A model generated the notes under the pieces. That model saw only the letters and a program-made list of their open reading frames with translations. It was not told the origin of the DNA and ran no database searches. The position numbers and the translations under genes are program-made. Positions 7,413 to 41,300 of a stretch of DNA of 64,000 nt are shown here, piece after piece (the first letter of the stretch is position 1; each line of letters starts with the position of its first letter). The stretch lies in NCBI GenBank assembly GCA_964247055.1, contig OZ176055.1, positions 5,270,001 through 5,334,000 on the forward strand, in the 5' to 3' direction. The stretch is from Paragordius varius (Eukaryota; Animalia; Nematomorpha).

Positions 7413-7750
7413 TACTTATAGAATTGCGTCTTAAAATTTTGATTTTATCTTGCATATTTTGCCATTATCATTTAATTCCGTAAATATATTTAATATACCG
7501 TGTAGGGTCCCATTCAGTGCTAAAAATAAAAGTATGTGCCATAGAATTTTTTTATATTAATGATAATAAAACAATTAAACAAATTTTACCACTTATGAAT
7601 TCTTGAAATATAGGATTTCTTTCAACATCTATATTATTTCAAACATAATATGTTAATAATATTTGGGCAATATTTAATGATCAAACATTCAAAAGAAATG
7701 TAAACTTTTAATCAAATATTTAATTTGCAAACCTAAAATCAAGTATAAAC

Positions 7751-7966
7751 CTATTTTTTCAGTACAAGAGAGATAACATTCAACGGGATCTCTAAAATTA
7801 TTAGCGTTTCCGTCACAACCGCTAAAACTGAATGGTTGGCAATAACCAGCCGATGCATTGTAATGAAAGCGGGTGTATTCATCGTTGCAGTTTCCTTTTT
7901 CTGGAGTCATATAACAATCTTCTGTTGTTCGTGGGACATTAATAACATTGCGAGATGCCAGTTTAT
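7751..7966 (-). CDS. Kunitz/BPTI protease-inhibitor domain exon (phase 1-1)
   Basis: CYMTPEKGNCNDEYTRFHYNASAGYCQPFSFSGCDGNANNFRDPVECYLSC has all six Cys, GC and GN.NNF motifs; AG at 7968-7967, GT at 7750-7749; 216 nt. Confidence 0.9.
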
Positions 7967-8386
7967 CTTGAATAAAAAGGCATTTTTATTTTTTATGATA
8001 AATCGTCCCTTTTTTTTAATGTGCTTATCGATTATTTTGGCCAACAAAAACGTTGTTATATTCTTTTGTTAATACATGCTTTATCAAATGCTCTTATCGT
8101 AAGAAATGAGATACCTTCCAAAGGAAATTAGGAGATTATAAGAAATTAACGTATTTAAACGGAAAACCACCCCTAATAAATAATTCAATTATTTCAATCA
8201 AAATTTTAGAATTTTATTCTATCGAAATATTATAATTGCACCTCAAGTTTTTCCTTAAACACTTAATGTTGCTCTTTCGACATTTAAACTTTGCCCTTTT
8301 AATGCCTTTTTTTGTTCTTCGGATTTTTTATATCGAATTTCAGCGTTAATAAAAGTTAGGAAAATCATATTTAATTCATTTAATAT

Positions 8387-11729: not shown

Positions 11730-11765
<36 letters not shown>

Positions 11766-12064
11766 CCAATTTGTACCCTTTATTATGATTTATGTTTACC
11801 GGCCTCGTTTTCGTCTTTTTGCGTGAAGGGGCGGTAAAATTAAATTTATAGCTTCTTACATCTCTTTTTAATGAGTAAATTGATATTTTCTGGTTATACG
11901 CTTAAATCAATTTTTAAATGACTCTTATCGACTTATATAATGGTAAATGTTTAAAACCTTCAATTAATAAATTATGTGACTAGGTATAGTATTTTTGACA
12001 ATTACAATAATAACAACCGATTATTTTTTCAAGCAGACGATTTTAAAATTCCGAAAACACAATC

Positions 12065-13418
12065 ATGAATGAGTTAATGTGTAATAATAAAAAGTGCCGG
12101 AAAAGATTACTAAACCATGCCTGGGTATTAATATTTTATAATGTTATTAGATAACTTCTTGCTCACGTAAATTTTAATGCGTAAATGAAAGATATTTTTT
12201 GTGATGAAGATGGATCTAGGGAATTTAATAGAACACCGTCCATATGTATGGCGTGCAATTCAAACCTGTCCGGGAAATATGATGTTATACATACCGATTT
12301 AGCGCCTTCCGAACAATATAAAAGCGTATGTATTTTATGGATCTCAATAATTATTTATTTCTGATTAAAAAATTGAAAATTGCATTATAATGTTATATAT
12401 ATTTAAATTGGTAGATGGTTTTATCCGGTCTAAAACCCGAAATAATTTTGGAAATAACAAGCCAAGCAATGTCTTTCTGGTGCTATCAAGTTATAGCATC
12501 AATATTAAAATTAGGCATCGCAAGAAATTGCGCTTCAGGAGCATATGGTTAATAAATCAAAAGAAAAATTGTCTAAGGTTGAAGAATATTATGAAGAGGT
12601 TATAACCAAAATTACTGCTGAAATTAATGGTACATTATCGAATATACGAGATAGCTTTGAAAATAAATATAAATAATTTAAAAAAAGAAAATGAAAATTC
12701 AAGGTTAAAATATAGCGATATGACGGCAAAATATAATGAAATGTTCGAAAAATATACAGAGAAAGCAAGGCAACATCAAAAACTACAGGCAGCTATATTT
12801 ATTTATAGATTAGATGATGTATGAACAGCTAAGGAGAAATACATTAACAAAAACACCTATGCCCAATATAATGATGGCTCTAAAAGAAAAATCAAATATG
12901 GATTTTCCTTTAATCACAAGGGGTTTTTAATTATATTTTATTAACAACTATGTTATAACTTTGTATCTTATAACCATATAATTTAATTAAAAAATTTTAC
13001 CGACTACTTTACATATACGTTAATTATTTAATGCTTTCATCACTTGTGTCGTTTTTAGAATCATTACACATTTAGTAATAAGGATAAACAAACACATTCA
13101 AACCTTAGACTATTAATAATATATTATTTTTAGCAGATATTTTAAATAATGAATATATTGAAGTTTTATTTCGATATATTAATTTAATTTATAGATTTAA
13201 TGAAATCTGCTGTATATAGACCAAAATTGCCCTCACCCGAAACGATGAACAAACAATCGAGTAATAATATTGACTAATATTATCTTTATATTATATTTTA
13301 TATAGAGGAAGATATGGATGGATTCAATTTTCGCCCCGTTATTAACAATGTTCAGCATCATTCACTTATGTTTAGAAACAGTAATTCAAACCTTCTAGAT
13401 CTCGAAAATCGAAACTAA
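12065..13418 (+). CDS. CCNB1IP1: HEI10 meiotic RING E3 ligase, 9 exons, 273 aa: 12065-12124, 12151-12166, 12192-12325, 12415-12489, 12515-12629, 12655-12788, 12814-12922, 13195-13260, 13306-13418
   Basis: Spliced product MNELMCNNKKCRKRLLNHAWITSCSHIFCDEDGSREFNRTPSICMACNSNLSGKYDVIHTDLAPSEQYKSMVLSGLKPEIILEITSQAMSFWCYQASQE...QKLQMMYEQLRRN...DGFNFRP aligns colinearly with human CCNB1IP1 as I recall it (HIFCDQHGSGEFSRSPAICPACNSTLSGK...MVLAGLRPEIVLDISSRALAFWTYQ); total 822 nt is divisible by 3. Confidence 0.93.
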
Positions 13419-13570
13419 ATATATTATCTTTAATATTTATTGTTTAAACAAAAAACGAAAAAGATGTATGCATACAATTAATATCACAAAAATGTAACAT
13501 ATTTACTAAGCTATAAAGTTTACAAAAAATATGCAACAAAAAATGCCATAATTGTTTCGCTTAATGTTTC

Positions 13571-16500
13571 CTAATAATCATCATAGTCTCCATGTCCACC
13601 ATAACTTTTATCAGGCTTATCAGGATTAAGCGTTATCAAATCATCAATCCGCAAAATGGTTATAGCAGCCTCAGTTGCAAATTTGATAGCCTTGATTTTA
13701 CTCACAGCAGGTTCTAAAATACCGGCAGTTTTATTATCTTTAATTGTTCCCTCCAACAAATCTAATCCAGACCTAGGAAAAATATGAATTTTATAAAAGA
13801 TTAAGCAGATAGCTTTTAACTCTATGCAAGAAAAAAATTGGGTTTGGAAATATATTACAACATAAAATATTAGCAGGTATTATGAAAAGAAAAATTGGAT
13901 GTGTAATTAATCTAACAATGTTAAATCTAGTTTTTCGTATAATAAAAATAATGGAAGTTTTTGTGAATTGTGAGGCAAAAAATACCATTTCCAACTCTCT
14001 TTATTGACATTTTGGCCAGCGCTCGTGTTTATTTTATCATTCTTTACCCCATGCCCCAAAGATGATGAGTGACCGTCATTACAAGTGTTGGGGTTATTGG
14101 TTTCATTAGTTGGCAACGATGATACAACATTGTTGGCAGTCGTTTTGAACGTTTGAGCCACATTGTGAAGAGCCCGGAGTCTAGAAACCAACTCGGTCGT
14201 ATCAAGTGCAGCATTAGTCGCCAAAGTTTTAGGGATAACTAATAGGGCATTCGCAAATTCAGCAATAGCAAGTTGTTCCCGACTGCTCTGTAAGATAGAT
14301 AGGGAATAATTTTATAAAAACATGTAAAAGTTATAAAGATTCCCTATGCTATTTTTGTTACATGGTTCAAATGTTAAAATATTAAAAAGTAAGATATATC
14401 TTACCAAATTAAATTATTTTATTTTATAGCTTTTATTTATGTTTCCAAATATCTTCAAATCCCTTCCAAAAATAGTCCTTACAATTTATCTCATCCAAAT
14501 AACAATTTTTTAAATTTAAAACAAATGAAAAACGCCGTTAAAGTTTAGCAAGCATGATAATCTTTTCAATGATTTTGAATAAAATTAATAAGGTATTATT
14601 CAATAAAGAAGAGTATAAATGATTTAAAGTAAAAAATGTATACTATGGATGTCGCAAAATGTTCCAAGTAAACGCTACAGGCCGTTTCTACACTCCCGCC
14701 ACCCGCAACCAGAGTTTTGCTTTCAAGGACTCTTTTGCAAACGCATAGGGCGTCATGTAATGAACGCTCGCATTCATCCAAAGCCGTGTCATTCGGTCCG
14801 CGCAGGATAATGCTAGCTGCCGTCCTGGCTTTTGGTCTAAATGAGATTTAAATAAAATATGTAAACTTGAATGTAAAAATAAGTTAATATTATATTAATC
14901 TATAATATAGCAATTACGGTTAATATTATTTGATTATATCTCTGTAGCATTTATTAATGGAAATAAATAATATTACCTTAAAATAACGGAATTAAAGATT
15001 TAAAGATGGTATACTATTTTTCAAAATTTTTAAGATATTATATTGATTATATAACAAGTGTCAAAAATATAGGTATTTCATATACTAAAAGAAAAAATCT
15101 TTACGGTAATTAAATATCATTATCGGCTTGAAATAATGATGAAAAAAATTCAAAAGCAAATCATTTTTTAAAAATAATAAAAACTTAACTTTTTGATGAT
15201 ATATTTACCCGTTTATCAAAATGAGTTCATCGTCGCACACACGTTTTTGAATAACTTCCTCGGCTTGACCCAAAAAGCTGTTTTCAAACGTTTCATCACC
15301 TTCCAAATTCGATAGACTGACAAGAAGCGTTGCTACATTAAAACAAAAACAATGATATATTTTTCGAACAATAACAATTGGTGATCTTCTTTTGTTTATA
15401 TAAACAAAATCTATCAAAAATTATATAAAAAAACGTATAAACCTATTTTTTTAAATCGATATGATACTTAATTAAATCCATTATAGAAAATAAACTTTAA
15501 GAAATACATTAGAATAATAATGATTGAATAAAATTTAAATGAAAATCATATACTACAAAAAATATACAATCTAAAAGTTCCAAATAAATTGAAATTTATT
15601 TTAAAGGAAAAAAAAACTAATATATAATTTTAGATAAAAAATATCTACATTAATTACCCCCCGTGGCCTTTGCGATACGTTTAAGATCTGCCTTTTTACA
15701 TCTGCGCACGGCCATACAACCGGCTTCGACGAACGGTTTGAGGCACAAATCATCGATTCCGCCAGTGGTTAGAACAACATTCGCACCTGCTGCAATGATC
15801 TTGTTTATCTTTTCACGAACCAAATCTATTTCTCTGCAGAAATTTTATAAGAATATATTTAAGAGTACATGAATAATTCAAATACATTAACAAAGTTTTG
15901 TATTTTGTATGGAGATTTAATAATAATTAAAAATATGTTATAGAAGTAGGACTTATAAATTAAAAAATTTACAAATTCGGTTAACCTAATTAAGTGTCGG
16001 ATATTATCAACATAAAGTTTTGCGATGTTATACATAAACAGCTAAGTTTTATTAAAAGATATCTTGCAATTAAACCTTTGACGAATATCTGACAATTTTT
16101 CTGGATCAGTAACTAAAACATGAACACCCATCGCCATTTTAGCCTTTTGTAAGCTAAAATCTAAACAAGCGATCCGAGCGTTAGTGACTTGCTTAGGCAT
16201 GGCTAAAATAAAAAAATGTTAAAATATTTTAGTAAAATTTAAAAAAAATATGGTTTAAAACTAAAATCCGAAGTGAAAGAATTATTAATTTGTATCACAA
16301 CAAAATATCCTTACCCTGTGAAGCGACAGTACAATTCAAGGCATAACCATGAATTAACATACTCTCCTTAAAGCTTTTCCCGTGACTCTTGAGAACATTA
16401 ATGCTCTTTATTGGGTATTTGTATTGACCAACCAATAAGGAATTGGCATCTTTGTTAGCTAATATGTTAAAAGAGGGATTTAAACCGGAACCAGTTTTTT

Positions 16501-17962
16501 TCAAAACCGTTATTACCAAAAAATACCAAAAACGATTCATCTTTTTATTTTTTAATACGATAGTAACCTTAAAAAATTTTAGTGTTTTTATCATTCGAAT
16601 TGTATATTTTCTTAAATTCTAATATATTTTATATTTTTGCGGCATTATTCAAATTATATCAAAAATGATATTAGTAAATAGAATAATTAGAAGCATTCAA
16701 AAAATAATGGAGGAAACAATTTTTTTTGCAGCCTGAACCGTTCCGTTCGAATAAGTGTGAATTAGAGACTAAAATTTAGTTAAAACCAAAACCAACGGTT
16801 CCGATCACTTTAAAAAATTATTGAATAGTTAGGCACACTATATGTTCTGAAAAAATCAACTCACTTGAAGCGTTAGTGATTGATGAAGTTAGACCGCTTC
16901 CCACATGAGCGTTAGAAATGCCGGATATTGCTCCAGAATTGGCGTGATCGGGAAATCTCACGGCAAAACACGCATCAACAACAATCGTGGCAAAATAATT
17001 AACGATTTCGGGACCGCCTAAAACATATAATAAAATTATAAATATAATTTTTTTAAGCGTCTTTGTAAGTACCGATTTATTTATTTGGTTATAACAATAT
17101 TCAAAAAATTGATGATGAATAATTCAAATAAATTTTATTTAGATGTTAATTTATTAAACAAGCTATGAAACAAATACATCGGTATTCAAAAAAGATATTT
17201 AAATAAAAATAAAGCACGATATCCCCAAAATAATTCGGCATTATTGTTAACTTATATTAGCACGGTTTAATAGATGGTAGAGTTAAAAAATTTAATTGAT
17301 TAACCTAATAATTTGCTAGCTAAACTAGTTCGAGCACAAGCAAGTATCGCTTCCATTCCCAATGATTCAACGGGTATTATCAATTGTTCTTTGATATATT
17401 TACAGGCTTCCTTAGCTGCTAAACGGTAGCCACTGATGATAGAAGTCGGATGAATTTTCCATTGTATTAAAGTTTCTGCTCGTTTGAGGAGTTCGGCAGC
17501 TATGATAACCTACATGAAACAAATTTTAAACAATCAAACATGTATAACGCTTTATAAATGAATAATATATATGAATACTTACAACTGAGGTAGTTCCGTC
17601 GCCAACTTCTTGATCCTGCAGGTCGGCTAATTCAACCAAAATTTTGGCCGCCGGATGTTCAACCTCCAAGAGTTTCAAAATAGTGGCTCCATCATTTGTA
17701 ATTGTTACATCCTATTAAAAAAATAAAATAGTTAGCGTAATAAAATAAAGGGGTAAAAAGTCATAAGAAAAGACATGATTACTCCAATGTCATCAACTAG
17801 CATTTTGTCCAATCCCACAGGTCCTAAACTACTTTTAACTATATTGGCTATGGTCTTGCACGCAGTCACTATAATTTAACAAATTTTTATACCATTTTGA
17901 CTTCTAATATCCCGACCAGAAGTCCTGTTACCATCGAGCATGAGTGAAGTGAGAGACGCCAT
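13571..17962 (-). CDS. TCP1: T-complex protein 1 subunit alpha (CCT1), 12 exons, 636 aa: 17962-17893, 17868-17783, 17711-17583, 17509-17305, 17017-16865, 16458-16315, 16202-16076, 15833-15658, 15332-15209, 14836-14644, 14287-13986, 13772-13571
   Basis: [75 protein letters not shown]; all junctions GT-AG and in frame. Confidence 0.97.
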
Positions 17963-18006
17963 TATAAAGTTAAACAAATGTTTTAATAAAAAATTCAAAA
18001 TTTGAC
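17963..18006. promoter_or_regulatory. 44-bp divergent spacer between TCP1 and DDX23 start codons; TATAAA at 17963-17968 on +
   Basis: TCP1 ATG (minus) at 17962-17960 and DDX23 ATG at 18007; in-frame TAA at 17971 upstream of DDX23 ATG. Confidence 0.7.
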
Positions 18007-21000
18007 ATGCCCGAAGTTATTGATTTGGATGATAAACCTGATACTGTAGACGAAATTGATTTAACAACTGTTGATGACAAAGAAATTAAAGAATCAAGTT
18101 ATGATAAGTCCAAACGGTATATTAAATTTTTTTACCGAAAATGATTTTCTGCTTCATATTCAATATTTTTTAATTTTTAGTTCTCCTCACAAACAAAAAA
18201 AGGAGAAAAAACATAGGGATCATAATAATGACAGGAAGCGTCATAAACCAGATAGAGAGGAAAGATACTCATCCCATTCAGGGAATAATCGTTCCAGTGA
18301 TTCTATAAGTCATCATAGAAAGGAGCGTTTTCATGAGCCTTCTTACCATAGACATGTTGCAAATGATATTCGTCACCAAGAATACATTGATAGAAATAAT
18401 TCTTACCAACAAACACGTGATAAAAGTTCCCACTCCACCCGTTATGAAGAAAAGCATAACAGAGATAACAAAAGTCCAATTAATCAAAAATCTAGCACAA
18501 AGTCACAAACTACTCACGAAAACCGGTGTGAAGATCAAAAAAGTAAGGATAATACCCAAAAAACTGACAAACCAGATATACATAAATCTGCTACCGTTCA
18601 CTCCCATTCTACTGACGATAATAATAATAATACAAAAACCAAGAAAAAATCTTCTAAAGATAAAAAGAAACCCAAAATAAAGGATCCACCTAAAGATGTA
18701 TCAGAACCAACCGATTTTACGAACAACGATATTGTAAGAACCAAAAGAGTTCCATTGTCGCTTGATGAATTATTAGCTAAGAAGAAAGCTGAAGAAGAAA
18801 CACTAAGCAAAGTATTACGATTAATATATAACTGGTAAATTAATATATTGCAAGATATGAAATGGTACTCATGATTTTATTATAAATGTAAGATAAAAGT
18901 ATTCTTTCTTTTCTATATACTTTTAACATTATACTTGTTAATGCAAGGAATCACATCTTAATCGTTTATTAAATCGCGTAACTATTAAAACGCTTTAAAT
19001 ATTACTTTGTTAAAAAACTTGTAAATATTTTACATAATATTATTTACCAATGGTTATAAATAATTTGTTTTTTAATAGATTGCAATAAATGGTTTTATTG
19101 GCAATGCTCAGTTTTATCTTGATTAATAAAAGCTATTTGTATGTTTCAGCCCAAATTTTTGACAAAAGAAGAACGAGTAGCATTGGCTCTTAAGCGAAGA
19201 GAAGAGGTAGTCGCTCTTAAACGCCAGGAACAAGAAGAAACTCGCAAAAAACAGCAAGAGTTCCTAAAACAGGCTACTTTATCTACTGGTACGTTCTATA
19301 ATTAAATTGTAATCTAAAATGTTGTCAGATTTATAGTATGCAGTAGTTATATTTTACAAAATTTATGTAAATTTCGCGTAAAATGTATAGTTGTATTTTA
19401 TCGCTGCAAACTTACAAAAATAATGTTTTGAATATATTTGGTTATTTTAGGCATATTTAACACGCAATAATTATTTTGTATTTAAAACTATTGCAAGAAT
19501 TAATATTTTAAGGTTTTGACACATAACCACTTTCTCCAATAAGTGTATTGAGTTACAGTCTTATAAACAATTAATACAGGGATAAACATACGGAACCAAT
19601 TATTGCTTATATAATTTAATTTACAATCCAGACATTTTTAATATGAAACATATGTTAAACCGTCACAGTAATAATATTAATATGATCAAAATAATACGTT
19701 TAAATTTTTAGAGCTCTGGGTAAAACTGCCCCAATATGTCATTGTGGACAAAAAAAGTGAAAAGGTCACGAAGTGTTAAAGTCAGTTTAAAAAAGAAACC
19801 ATATTTTTAAAATTTGATTCATAAGTAACCTATCTTTTTTTGGATACAAAGTAAGAAAAAGATGTGTATGGTAACGCATCTAATTTTAGTTTTCACAATT
19901 GTAATAATATAGAGTGCGTGAAATAGTGAAGAAATATGGTTTTTTATTAATATAAAAATAAAACATTAGTTTTATTTTGTAGAGGAATTTTATTTTAGAT
20001 GTAAAATGTATAATTATATTGGATCTATGATTCTTTATTTAAATAATTAAAAATAAAAATGTAAAGAGCTATGCTATAAGTTTTTATTTTAAATTATTTA
20101 ATCGATAAAGGATCATGATTATTTAGATGCGAAATATTTTATTTTTGTTAATCTAATTAACTACTTTGGTTCCTTATATACGAGTTATTTTATATATTTA
20201 ATGTATTAGAAACACCTTATGAGCGCGAACGCAGAGAAAGGCGAGAGCGCAGAGAACGCGAACAAGCCGAAGAAGAAATGGAAAGGAACAAAATTAAGGA
20301 GGAAAAGGACAAAGACAAGGAACTAAATGCCATCAAGGTTATATTAGTTTTGCAAAAATGCTTGTAATTAAATATATAAAATATTTTTTTTAAGAAATAT
20401 ATACCTTTAAATCTATTCAATATACAAGTTAAAAATAATCTATGTAACCTCAATGGGAGTCTTTGGTTACCAGTTTCACGTATTTCTCAAAAAAACGGTA
20501 CCGGACCAATTGTTTCCGTTCTATTTGCGAATAATATAAGTTTTGATTTAAACATCTAATATTTTGGATATTGTTTCAATTTCTTAAATTTACAGATACC
20601 TTATTTTTAATACAACCAAAAAAATGTTTTTTGAAAAGTTAAATATATATTTTATATAAAATAGTAAACATACAAAACAATATAAATTTTAGTATTAAAA
20701 TGATATAAATATATATATATATATATATATAGTTTTGAACCCCGGTCTCGGTTTTAAAACGATTATGGAAGCATTTTATACAAACCATGGTTATAAAACA
20801 ATTTTTTAATTTATAAACGGTCTAAAAGAGCTATAGAATATATTATATTATTTGTTTTTTAGGAGAAATATTTGGGCATGTTAAAAAAGAAGAAAAGGGC
20901 TCGTCGATTAAATGAACGCAAATTTGTTTTTGATTGGGATGCGACAGAAGACACTTCTACAGATTATAATCCCATTTATAAAGAAAGACACGATCTACTC

Positions 21001-38300: not shown

Positions 38301-41300
38301 ATTAATTCTAAGAAATAAAAAATTTCGATGATGCCTTTATTTCCAAAAAATCAATAATTATTTTCGAAAATTAATTAGATGTTTGAAACTGTTGCAAAAA
38401 TCTATATAAATTACTGATCTATCCCCTGCAATAAATGTTTGTGTTTATTGGATAACAGGGCTCCTCCTCCCCATGATGCCTAAAATAAATTGTTTTAATA
38501 AAAACGATTCTCTATAATTAAAAATATAAAATAAATTAAACCGAACAAAACTCATTATAAGGAAAAATTACGTCAACATGAAACCATATGCCATATTTTC
38601 GGCAAACCGTGCCTATCGGTTCAAGAGAATCAAAAGCCCCATACACAGTTGTCCCAGAAGTTGCATTTACCAGAAATGGTCGATTACCACTCTTGAGTTG
38701 ATGTATTATGTGGTATTCCAAATCACTTACCAACATGCGCCCGCTAAATATTTAGAGTTAAAATCAAATGAGTTTAGTTCTATAACTTTTTCTTTTTGGT
38801 TAGTTATTGAACATTAAATGTTTTTGGCGAATTCAACAAATTTATAAAAAAATTTAACGCTATGATATATGAAAATACGATGCGATAATCTATAAATATA
38901 GATTTTTGGGGAATTATATATCAAAAATTAGATTAGATGTTACAAATGAATGAAATGTAACATGAAATTACATTTTATCCGTGAGGTAAATATTTTTACC
39001 AATTAGTGCATTATTTAATTACAGAATATATAATTTATGAAAATGCTATTACAAATATATAATCTTGAAAAATACTTACTTTGAATCGCATTTAACCGTA
39101 ACTACATTATCGGTCCCGATTCCAGACACCGCAGCCGCTCCTTTGATTGAATAATGGCTCTGACAGTATATATGTTTCATAATTTTATATTGGTAAAAAC
39201 AATTGAAATCAAACATGACTCTTAATGGTAATTTAAATCAAGAATCGTATAATATAAAGTTTTAAGAATATAAGTCAATCTAAAAATCTTGAATATAATA
39301 ATTTACAAATGAATTTGGGCACAATTTTTTAGGTAATTTTTATATATTCCCTTCAAGTACAGTATGGGTAAAAATAGGCAAGTATTTCATTAAATATTGC
39401 CATATAAAATTTACAGTGAAAAGCAACATTATTGGCTTATTGGTGTACAGAAAATTTTTTCACATAATTACTAAATTTGATTTCGTATTTATTAAAGGAA
39501 CAGGGAAGTCATTTATCAAAAAAGAATGGGATCTAAACATCTACAAAGTGGTGTGGGATATCACAAAAAACTTACAGACCCCTTTAAATTCAGACCGAAC
39601 AGTTCTACATTTCCTTCGTTCCTTTTAAGTTATGCTTTGAAAAAATGTATTATAAATTTAAAATATTAAAAGAAACGAAATACATGTTCCGAAGTAAAAA
39701 CGATTAATCTTCTGTCAAATGCGTAATTTCCTTTTTGTTTTGAATTCGGTTGAGTCCAATATCGTGCGCACAGTATTGCATACAAATTTGAAATGGTCCC
39801 ACCTTATAAAACATAACAATGTATATAGCAAAGCTGTAAAATTCGATTAATTTGGCAAAGCATTCTCAATATTGATTTATTAATTATGCAAAATATTTTA
39901 ATTCAGTTTAAAATTTAAACCATTTTAAATATCTCTGCATTTTAAAAAATTCCAATAATTATATTCGTGTAAATTGAACGCGCAATTTTTTCACACCGTC
40001 ATTTACAAGTTTGATACAATTTAAGTTCTTACTAAATGGGAAAAAAGACACTATAAACTGATTATTATTAAATATACAGATTTTTTATGCTTCGGTTCTA
40101 ATATTTTTTTATAATTTATCTGAAAAATAAATCAGATATGATTCCTGTTCAGTCCCAAGGTTATATAATTCTGCCTTTAATCACGTTTAATTATTTTCTT
40201 TTTGGGTATTGAATTTCGCTACGCAATACAATAATTTTGGTAAGATCGAAAGCAAGCAATTCCTAATAAGAATTTTTAAAATGCATACCTGGACAAAAAA
40301 TACCATCAGCGTGCAAGAATCCCACAATATCACACATTTTATAGATCAAAAATTGTTCCATTAAAACATACACTGGCGATATTTCGTAGGTAAACCTTTA
40401 AAAAGAAAGTTTATGAAAGTTAATTAATCTTTAAGTTACAGTAAATTTGACTGAATGCGATTGTTAAACTATTTTTTAAAATTCAATTCTGCAAAAAAGC
40501 TGTGTTGAAAGTATTTATTCGCACGAGGAGCAGATTCTATAATAAAGATGTGTTATTTTTCCTATTATCGTATTTAACATTGTTTGACTTTTTAAAATTT
40601 AGTTTTTTTATGGTAGGTGTTAAAATTTTTAGTACTTAACCTTCATGACCTTTTGGGGTAGTTATCCCAGAGTGAGAAATTTAAATATCTTATTTAAGAT
40701 ATCAGACCGAATGTTAAAATAAGCTTTCCATAGCCTTTTAGGCGCATAATATAATTTTTTTTAAAAAAAAATATAAAATTGTGAAAAATCATCTCAAATT
40801 TTTTCGCCATTTTTTTATTAAATTTTTTTAAAATCGCTAATACAATAAGCAAATAAATGTATATTATGGTTAAAAGGCCTAAATAATTAACTTTAGTAAG
40901 CTAAGTTGCATTTTACCAACAAAAACTGGATATTTATTGATTTAAAATCAGCTGTTAAATCAATCGTGTTTTGAGGCTGTCCCGATTTTAGATTCTAAAA
41001 GTTACAAAACTAAAAAATATACAAGCTTTTTTAAAAACAGGAGAATGATGTTTGACAATTAAATTTTAATAAAATATTTTCAAAACATTATTTTATTTAC
41101 GAGATTGAGCTCTGGGATATTAAACTTCCCCAATATGTCCAACAAAAAATGAAAAGGTCATGAAGTGTCAATATTACTTTAAAAAAAAGTAGTGGGGTTT
41201 TTGTAGCCATATTTTTAACAATAAAACATTTTGTTTACAATTTAGTAAGTATATAAATTAGTTTACATGTTAGAGTTTGTAACTGCTGTAAGAATTTCTC

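Follow-up and report, generated by a model that had tools for sequence, protein, structure and literature searches.

Introns of fewer than 30 nucleotides (nt) were, to our knowledge, long thought to be absent from animals. A survey of 51 genomes dated September 2026 records them from two groups only, dicyemids (Dicyema) and myxobolid Myxozoa; it foresees further cases and associates such introns with a parasitic life, a small body, and a compact genome (PMC13644364). Both groups have introns of 22–27 nt in which the splice signals are reduced to "GTa...AG" and A residues precede the AG (PMC13644364). The main text of that survey, as distinct from its supplementary genome list, makes no mention of Nematomorpha. 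Here we describe a stretch of 64,000 nt from the nematomorph Paragordius varius (contig OZ176055.1, positions 5,270,001–5,334,000, forward strand; hereafter the window, to which all coordinates refer) containing an ortholog of HEI10 (CCNB1IP1). Five segments of 25–26 nt interrupt the coding sequence (CDS) of this gene, and their ends and positions indicate that they are very probably real U2-type spliceosomal introns, four of them GT-AG and one GC-AG. The neighboring gene TCP1 carries a similar segment of 24 nt.

The locus has features in common with each of the closest described systems. Dicyema japonicum, also a parasite, has spliceosomal introns below 30 nt with reduced GTa/AG signals, no polypyrimidine tract, and an A upstream of the AG (PMC13644364). 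Short introns predominate in its 67.5-Mb genome of 5,012 genes, where the mean intron length is 38 bp (PMC6736024). In the window they are a minority, the other introns ranging from 45 nt to several hundred nt or more, and the species, unlike Dicyema, is a large-bodied ecdysozoan. The myxobolids Henneguya, Thelohanellus, and Myxobolus, with median intron lengths of 22–27 nt, resemble the window in having tiny introns at conserved positions between conserved exons, validated by this positional conservation; however, they are cnidarians with fast-evolving genomes of 20–200 Mb, and their introns have been confirmed by Iso-Seq (PMC13644364), whereas those of the window are known from DNA. The tiny introns of the window (25–26 nt for HEI10, 24 nt for TCP1) all lie at conserved exon junctions and fall under the 30-nt limit used in the survey; a predominance of short introns across the genome, with a median of 22–27 nt, as in the class it describes, is not what was found in the window, a single-window sample.

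Two more distant systems offer further points of comparison. Paramecium and other ciliates have a modal intron length of about 25 nt, and retention leads to a frameshift or an in-frame stop (PMC5014332); ciliates differ in being unicellular, with essentially all introns tiny and no kilobase-sized introns in the same genes. Human ultra-short introns (43–65 nt) and SPF45/RBM17-dependent splicing also combine a truncated or absent polypyrimidine tract with the major spliceosome and an alternative 3'-site factor (PMC4463651; bioRxiv 10.1101/784868). These introns are roughly twice as long as those of the window, for which SPF45/RBM17 splicing is a plausible mechanistic analog. No paper linking hairworms with intron length was found in the literature searched, which left out the hairworm genome paper of Cunha et al. 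2023; in the preprint on the Gordionus genome, the word "intron" does not occur.

A HEI10 Gene with Five Probable Introns of 25–26 nt

Removing the five segments (mini-introns 1, 2, 4, 5, and 6, numbered by their rank among all introns of the gene) and one intron of 89 nt (12326–12414) leaves a single open frame from the ATG at 12065. With all eight introns removed, the spliced HEI10/CCNB1IP1 product, encoded on the plus strand and ending at a stop codon at 13418–13420, is 273 amino acids (aa) long. The coordinates, lengths, and sequences of the five segments had been given in an earlier sequence-only reading of this DNA, and all proved exact. The gene is organized as follows:

12065–12124, plus strand: HEI10 exon 1, 60 nt; encodes the first RING cysteines and aligns to residues 1–20 of the Gordionus protein (P0025)
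12125–12150, plus strand: mini-intron 1, 26 nt, GT-AG, phase 0, after CDS nt 60
12151–12166, plus strand: micro-exon (exon 2), 16 nt; codes for I-T-S-C-S-(H), with two RING zinc ligands
12167–12191, plus strand: mini-intron 2, 25 nt, GT-AG, phase 1, after CDS nt 76
12192–12325, plus strand: HEI10 exon 3, 134 nt; without the Gordionus/amphioxus intron at CDS nt 139
12326–12414, plus strand: intron 3, an ordinary short intron, 89 nt, GT-AG, phase 0, after CDS nt 210
12415–12489, plus strand: HEI10 exon 4, 75 nt
12490–12514, plus strand: mini-intron 4, 25 nt, GT-AG, phase 0, after CDS nt 285
12515–12629, plus strand: HEI10 exon 5, 115 nt
12630–12654, plus strand: mini-intron 5, 25 nt, GT-AG, phase 1, after CDS nt 400
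12655–12788, plus strand: HEI10 exon 6, 134 nt; without the Gordionus/amphioxus intron at CDS nt 421
12789–12813, plus strand: mini-intron 6, probably 25 nt, GC-AG, phase 0, after CDS nt 534; alternative 22-nt GC-AG intron at 12792–12813
12814–12922, plus strand: HEI10 exon 7, 109 nt
12923–13194, plus strand: intron 7, 272 nt, GT-AG, phase 1, after CDS nt 643
13195–13260, plus strand: HEI10 exon 8, 66 nt
13261–13305, plus strand: intron 8, 45 nt, GT-AG, phase 1, after CDS nt 709; length divisible by three, in-frame stop present
13306–13420, plus strand: last HEI10 exon; conserved F-x-F-R-P motif, then the stop codon

The identity of the gene is supported by similarity to CCNB1IP1 over its full length, which takes in the central coiled coil as well as the F-x-x-R-P motif at the C terminus. 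A search of a collection of 5.8 billion proteins returned 24 matches at E ≤ 1e-5, every named one of which is CCNB1IP1/HEI10-like. The top match is HEI10 of Gordionus sp. m RMFG-2023 (63% identity, E-value 3e-96), followed by proteins of amphioxus, echinoderms (starfish), molluscs, annelids, and cnidarians (44–53% identity, E-values from 1e-60 to 1e-50). The Pfam domain zf-RING_5 was recognized on residues 6–48 with an E-value of 7.6e-5, under its curated cut-off, and all RING Cys/His columns are conserved in an alignment of the window product with HEI10 of Gordionus, amphioxus, a starfish, and a nemertean. The window and Gordionus proteins have a one-residue RING insertion in common. That excision of the segments would yield a colinear HEI10, as the sequence-only reading had claimed, is thus borne out against HEI10 of five phyla. 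A perfect (AT)15 microsatellite (11732–11761) precedes the start codon of HEI10 by 300 nt.

Conservation of Intron Positions

Strong evidence comes from the intron positions of orthologs. We derived the exon chain of Gordionus HEI10 isoform X1 (P0025, locus L001), which re-translates to the deposited protein and has a single solution, and in the same way that of Branchiostoma lanceolatum HEI10 (P0002, locus L002). Gordionus introns follow CDS nt 60, 76, 139, 210, 285, 400, 421, 534, 640, and 694, and those of the window gene CDS nt 60, 76, 210, 285, 400, 534, 643, and 709. All five mini-introns (60, 76, 285, 400, and 534) therefore coincide with Gordionus introns to the nucleotide and in identical phase. 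Four of these positions are also found in the amphioxus, a deuterostome, the exception being nt 76. No gap occurs at any of the five junctions in the five-species alignment. Because the removed pieces fall, nucleotide-exact, on the intron positions of two other animals, the agreement is far beyond chance.

What differs between the species is intron length. HEI10 of Gordionus montsenyensis shares with the window gene the five positions and phases, the 16-nt micro-exon (L001 3125–3140), a weak splice consensus, and an AT-rich genome (26.93% GC), but its introns at the five positions span 47–2,685 nt (64, 2,685, 47, 586, and 2,549 nt, in the order given above), the shortest intron of the gene being 41 nt. 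The amphioxus introns at nt 60, 285, 400, and 534 measure 516, 565, 19,217, and 2,609 nt. As to the longer introns of the window gene, the position of intron 3 (nt 210) holds introns of 116 nt in Gordionus and 285 nt in amphioxus, intron 7 aligns with a 51-nt Gordionus intron, and the alignment position of intron 8 corresponds to a 1,234-nt Gordionus intron. Gordionus and amphioxus have both kept two ancient introns, at CDS nt 139 and 421, that the window gene precisely lacks, so intron loss has gone along with intron shrinkage. Owenia fusiformis HEI10 (L003) was dropped from the comparison of positions, its sole intron (3,843 nt) being at an unshared position.

Some features of the reference genes deserve mention in their own right. 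A second Gordionus RefSeq isoform, X2 (P0001), has another first exon (MQKTLNIICMD...) in place of exons 1–2, and is devoid of the first RING half and the micro-exon. In amphioxus HEI10, a 90-bp tandem array (L002 2351–4134, 19.7 copies, 95% match) begins inside exon 5, and the 19-kb intron at this place is the ortholog of the 25-nt intron 5 of the window. The repeated unit includes the last 39 nt of exon 5 (YEQVLTTTQAELS) plus a donor reading GTATCCTT, which resembles a U12-type 5' site.

Intron Boundaries and Effects of Retention

For each junction of the five mini-introns, we listed all frame-keeping, stop-free GT-AG pairs within ±15 nt. Introns 1, 2, 4, and 5 have one GT-AG solution each. 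Over the same interval around mini-intron 6, no GT is available and thus no GT-AG solution exists; this segment (12789–12813) begins with GC, a start that went unremarked in the sequence-only reading. Its 25-nt GC-AG solution is gapless against the orthologs, while the 22-nt GC-AG alternative inserts one Ala. We regard the exact 25-nt boundary as probable, with somewhat less assurance than the reality of the five introns themselves. The proposal of a class of 25–26-nt spliceosomal introns in an animal gene thus holds as far as positions and phases are concerned, but the 5' boundary of intron 6 is ambiguous by 3 nt.

In order, the donors of the five mini-introns read GTATTA, GTAAAT, GTTATA, GTACAT, and GCAGCT, and the acceptors TTAG, AAAG, TTAG, ATAG, and TTAG. 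U12-type introns have the 5' consensus (A/G)TATCCTT with a TCCTTAAC-type branch site, and none of the five donors bears any resemblance to this 5' consensus. It is also fair to say, as had been proposed, that the mini-introns have no polypyrimidine tract: none stands out in their sequence, which contains 39% T and 39% A but 6% C.

None of the five HEI10 mini-introns has a length that is a multiple of three. Retention of any one of them disrupts the frame, in agreement with the sequence-only reading, and brings in a premature stop 11–63 nt past the donor, the shortest distance being that of mini-intron 2. The introns whose length is a multiple of three (24 nt in TCP1, 45 nt in HEI10) each contain an in-frame stop. 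Such a pattern of frame-breaking or stop-bearing introns is known from Paramecium, and the ciliate retained-intron pattern has been linked to nonsense-mediated decay; six cases in the window prove nothing in this respect.

The Segments in DNA of Other Individuals

Four public runs (X1, X3, X4, and X5), derived from three samples, supplied contigs that we placed on positions 12040–18030 (5,991 nt). The contigs reproduce the mini-introns base for base or with unchanged length. There are no differences from the window in the X1 contigs 12040–12394 and 12406–12967, the X3 contig 12040–12330, and the X4 contig 12351–12656, and the X5 contig 12406–12925 shows eight substitutions and no gap. Mini-intron 1 is unchanged in contigs of X1, X3, and X5, mini-intron 4 is crossed gap-free by contigs of X1, X4, and X5, and mini-intron 5 is likewise crossed without a gap. 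Because contigs span the segments contiguously, these are not assembly errors, and their lengths are the same even in a visibly divergent individual. Both single-nucleotide polymorphisms (SNPs) listed in HEI10 exons, 12532 G>C (GCG>GCC) and 12880 C>T (CTA>TTA), are synonymous.

Other introns of the region vary between individuals. The 89-nt intron 3 has SNPs and indels, and indels of 1–10 nt cluster in the longer TCP1 introns (14384–14436, 15350–15445, and 17039–17200). The lack of indels in the six mini-introns is not significant, because their combined target is only 150 nt. HEI10 intron 7 is structurally different in sample S2 (X3 and X5), in which a joint 12998>13113 skips 114 nt, with loose ends at 12976 and 13133.

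Other Introns of the Window

A sixth intron below 30 nt is found in TCP1, which lies 5 kb downstream of HEI10:

17869–17892, minus strand: first intron of TCP1 (CCT-alpha), 24 nt, GT-AG, with an in-frame TAA

Without these 24 nt, the N-terminus of TCP1 aligns gapless to human CCT1 (6nr8_A, residues 6–136; E-value 1e-61), and tblastn with three TCP1 homologs shows them as an exact 8-codon insertion with a stop. The next TCP1 introns measure 71 and 73 nt by hand count, and later ones a few hundred nt, an approximate figure taken from open segments. The first intron of DDX23 is about 64 nt long.

These six introns are the only ones below 30 nt in the window, where they form a minority, and in a sample of this small size the range of 27–44 nt is empty. 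That tiny introns occur alongside longer ones, as the sequence-only reading had it, holds even within single genes: the three remaining HEI10 introns measure 45, 89, and 272 nt, and the 24-nt intron of TCP1 sits beside others of 71, 73, and hundreds of nt. The idea of a spliceosome working in two size regimes over-reads the data; any spliceosome copes with a wide range of intron lengths, and the oddity is the low length floor. A 30-nt intron candidate in a GAD-like gene (38512–38541, minus strand) was rejected by eye, the true intron being about 90 nt.

As for other features, G+C content is 25–31% across the whole window (73% A+T), which has no Rfam match. The start codons of TCP1 (minus strand) and of DDX23/PRP28 (plus strand), a spliceosomal helicase, are divergent and about 44 nt apart (17962–18007). 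An open segment at 7692–7985 (minus strand) has a Kunitz/BPTI-like cysteine pattern, judged by eye.

A Possible Splicing Mechanism

We propose that ancient HEI10 introns shrank, in this particular hairworm lineage, to about the shortest length that the spliceosome handles (24–26 nt in the window). They would be excised from the pre-mRNA by intron definition, with a 5' site cut down to GT(A/T) and, as branch point, probably an A some 8–10 nt upstream of the 3' AG. Six of six mini-introns have an A at −8 to −11 from the AG, as read by eye in DNA that is 73% A+T. In the proposed mechanism, the 3' AG, lacking a polypyrimidine tract, would be picked by its distance from the branch, which is the standard rule for 3'-site choice. 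Introns 5 and 6 each contain an unused AG 4–5 nt upstream of the acceptor, which may be skipped because it is too near the putative branch. The standard rule would then suffice, so that no special "length ruler" would be needed.

Unspliced RNA would be nonproductive, because each intron either is of a length not divisible by three or carries a stop. The 16-nt micro-exon is flanked by introns of 26 and 25 nt, and since two spliceosomes can hardly fit around such an exon, these are likely to be removed in order, by sequential rather than simultaneous splicing. Splicing of this kind is feasible in animals, given the introns of 22–27 nt documented in myxobolids and Dicyema (PMC13644364).

Weighing the Alternatives

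Several observations count against splicing as proposed here. The four runs covering 12040–18030 are DNA-like, with no joint at any mini-intron; as no contig joins the flanks of a mini-intron, the runs behave as DNA and are uninformative on splicing. Possible RNA runs of the organism are tiny, and none of the sampled words was found in them. No same-species, transcript-derived HEI10 protein was present in the 5.8-billion collection, whether queried with the full-length product or its N-terminal 145 aa (top identities 63% and 76%), nor was a same-species TCP1 protein found with the N-terminal 138 aa (top identity 83%). The donor of mini-intron 6, GCAGCT, agrees poorly with the extended consensus, its GC is noncanonical, and a 22-nt alternative is available. 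The branch point and the 3'-site rule are read from six sequences in 73% A+T DNA, and could reflect composition. A reference-free scan of the whole window for GT-AG segments of 18–70 nt that link open frames found these to be no more frequent than CT-AC, TG-GA, and other controls; within it, candidates of 22–28 nt were not enriched over the control dinucleotides either. The size class is not demonstrable statistically from this window alone. Owing to the shortness of the exons around them, the scan missed even the HEI10 introns, and is thus uninformative.

Against this background, it is unlikely, though still the most serious rival, that the introns are real but that some boundaries differ or splicing is inefficient, intron 6 being perhaps 22 nt long or partly retained, with a truncated protein as a result. 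Such a reading draws on the second frame-keeping GC-AG solution and missing GT donor of intron 6, on the weak match of GCAGCT to the usual GC-AG context (read by eye), and on the median splicing efficiency of about 25% of very short microsporidian introns (cited in PMC13644364). However, the 25-nt solution is gapless and falls on a phase-0 site after K-L-Q common to Gordionus and amphioxus, and the exons past intron 6 are still conserved, including the F-x-F-R-P motif. We consider it very improbable that HEI10 is a decaying pseudogene, in which the 25-nt pieces would be remnants of introns, or insertions that shift the frame, and would never be excised. Neither HEI10 RNA support in the runs nor a same-species protein in the databases speaks against decay, and there are parthenogenetic gordiids (PMC3329510), in which a gene for meiosis could degenerate. 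Yet nine of nine exons are open and colinear with the orthologs, the RING ligands are intact, the supposed insertions have GT/GC...AG ends and sit exactly at ancestral intron positions, both listed exon SNPs between individuals are synonymous, and the essential neighbor TCP1 carries a similar 24-nt segment with a stop. That the segments are assembly or sequencing artifacts, or are removed from DNA by programmed elimination instead of from RNA, is hardly credible: nothing specific favors elimination beyond a tight 25-nt length superficially like that of ciliate eliminated segments, whereas contigs of four runs and three samples keep the segments, no DNA contig joins their flanks, and GT-AG ends at conserved positions favor RNA splicing. 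Excision of the five segments as U2-type introns is thus the reading that we retain.

Implications for Hairworm Genomes

Beyond this locus, a broader scenario can be put forward only tentatively, and we rate it as rather doubtful: hairworms, which are large ecdysozoan parasitoids whose genomes are rich in repeats and reach a few hundred Mb, may have independently driven many ancient introns to a floor of about 22–28 nt while keeping kilobase-sized introns in the same genes. If true, this would be a third animal origin of introns below 30 nt, and the first without a miniaturized body or a compact genome. The hairworm case would carry such introns into Ecdysozoa and into a macroscopic animal with long introns kept, which would weaken the link to genome compaction. 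The same intron being 25 nt long here and 2.5–2.7 kb in Gordionus, these genes would offer a natural system for studying the lower length limit of splicing. There are also consequences for annotation, as a minimum intron length of about 30–40 nt could break or miss such genes, which bears on claims of gene loss in Nematomorpha. The view of the sequence-only reading that standard gene finders would overlook them is plausible, and agrees with, but is not proven by, the finding of no same-species HEI10 protein in the 5.8-billion collection. If the scenario is correct, gene finders whose minimum intron exceeds 25 nt would have created, as an annotation artifact, some of the "rampant loss of universal metazoan genes" described in the literature and of the low Benchmarking Universal Single-Copy Orthologs (BUSCO) scores of this phylum.

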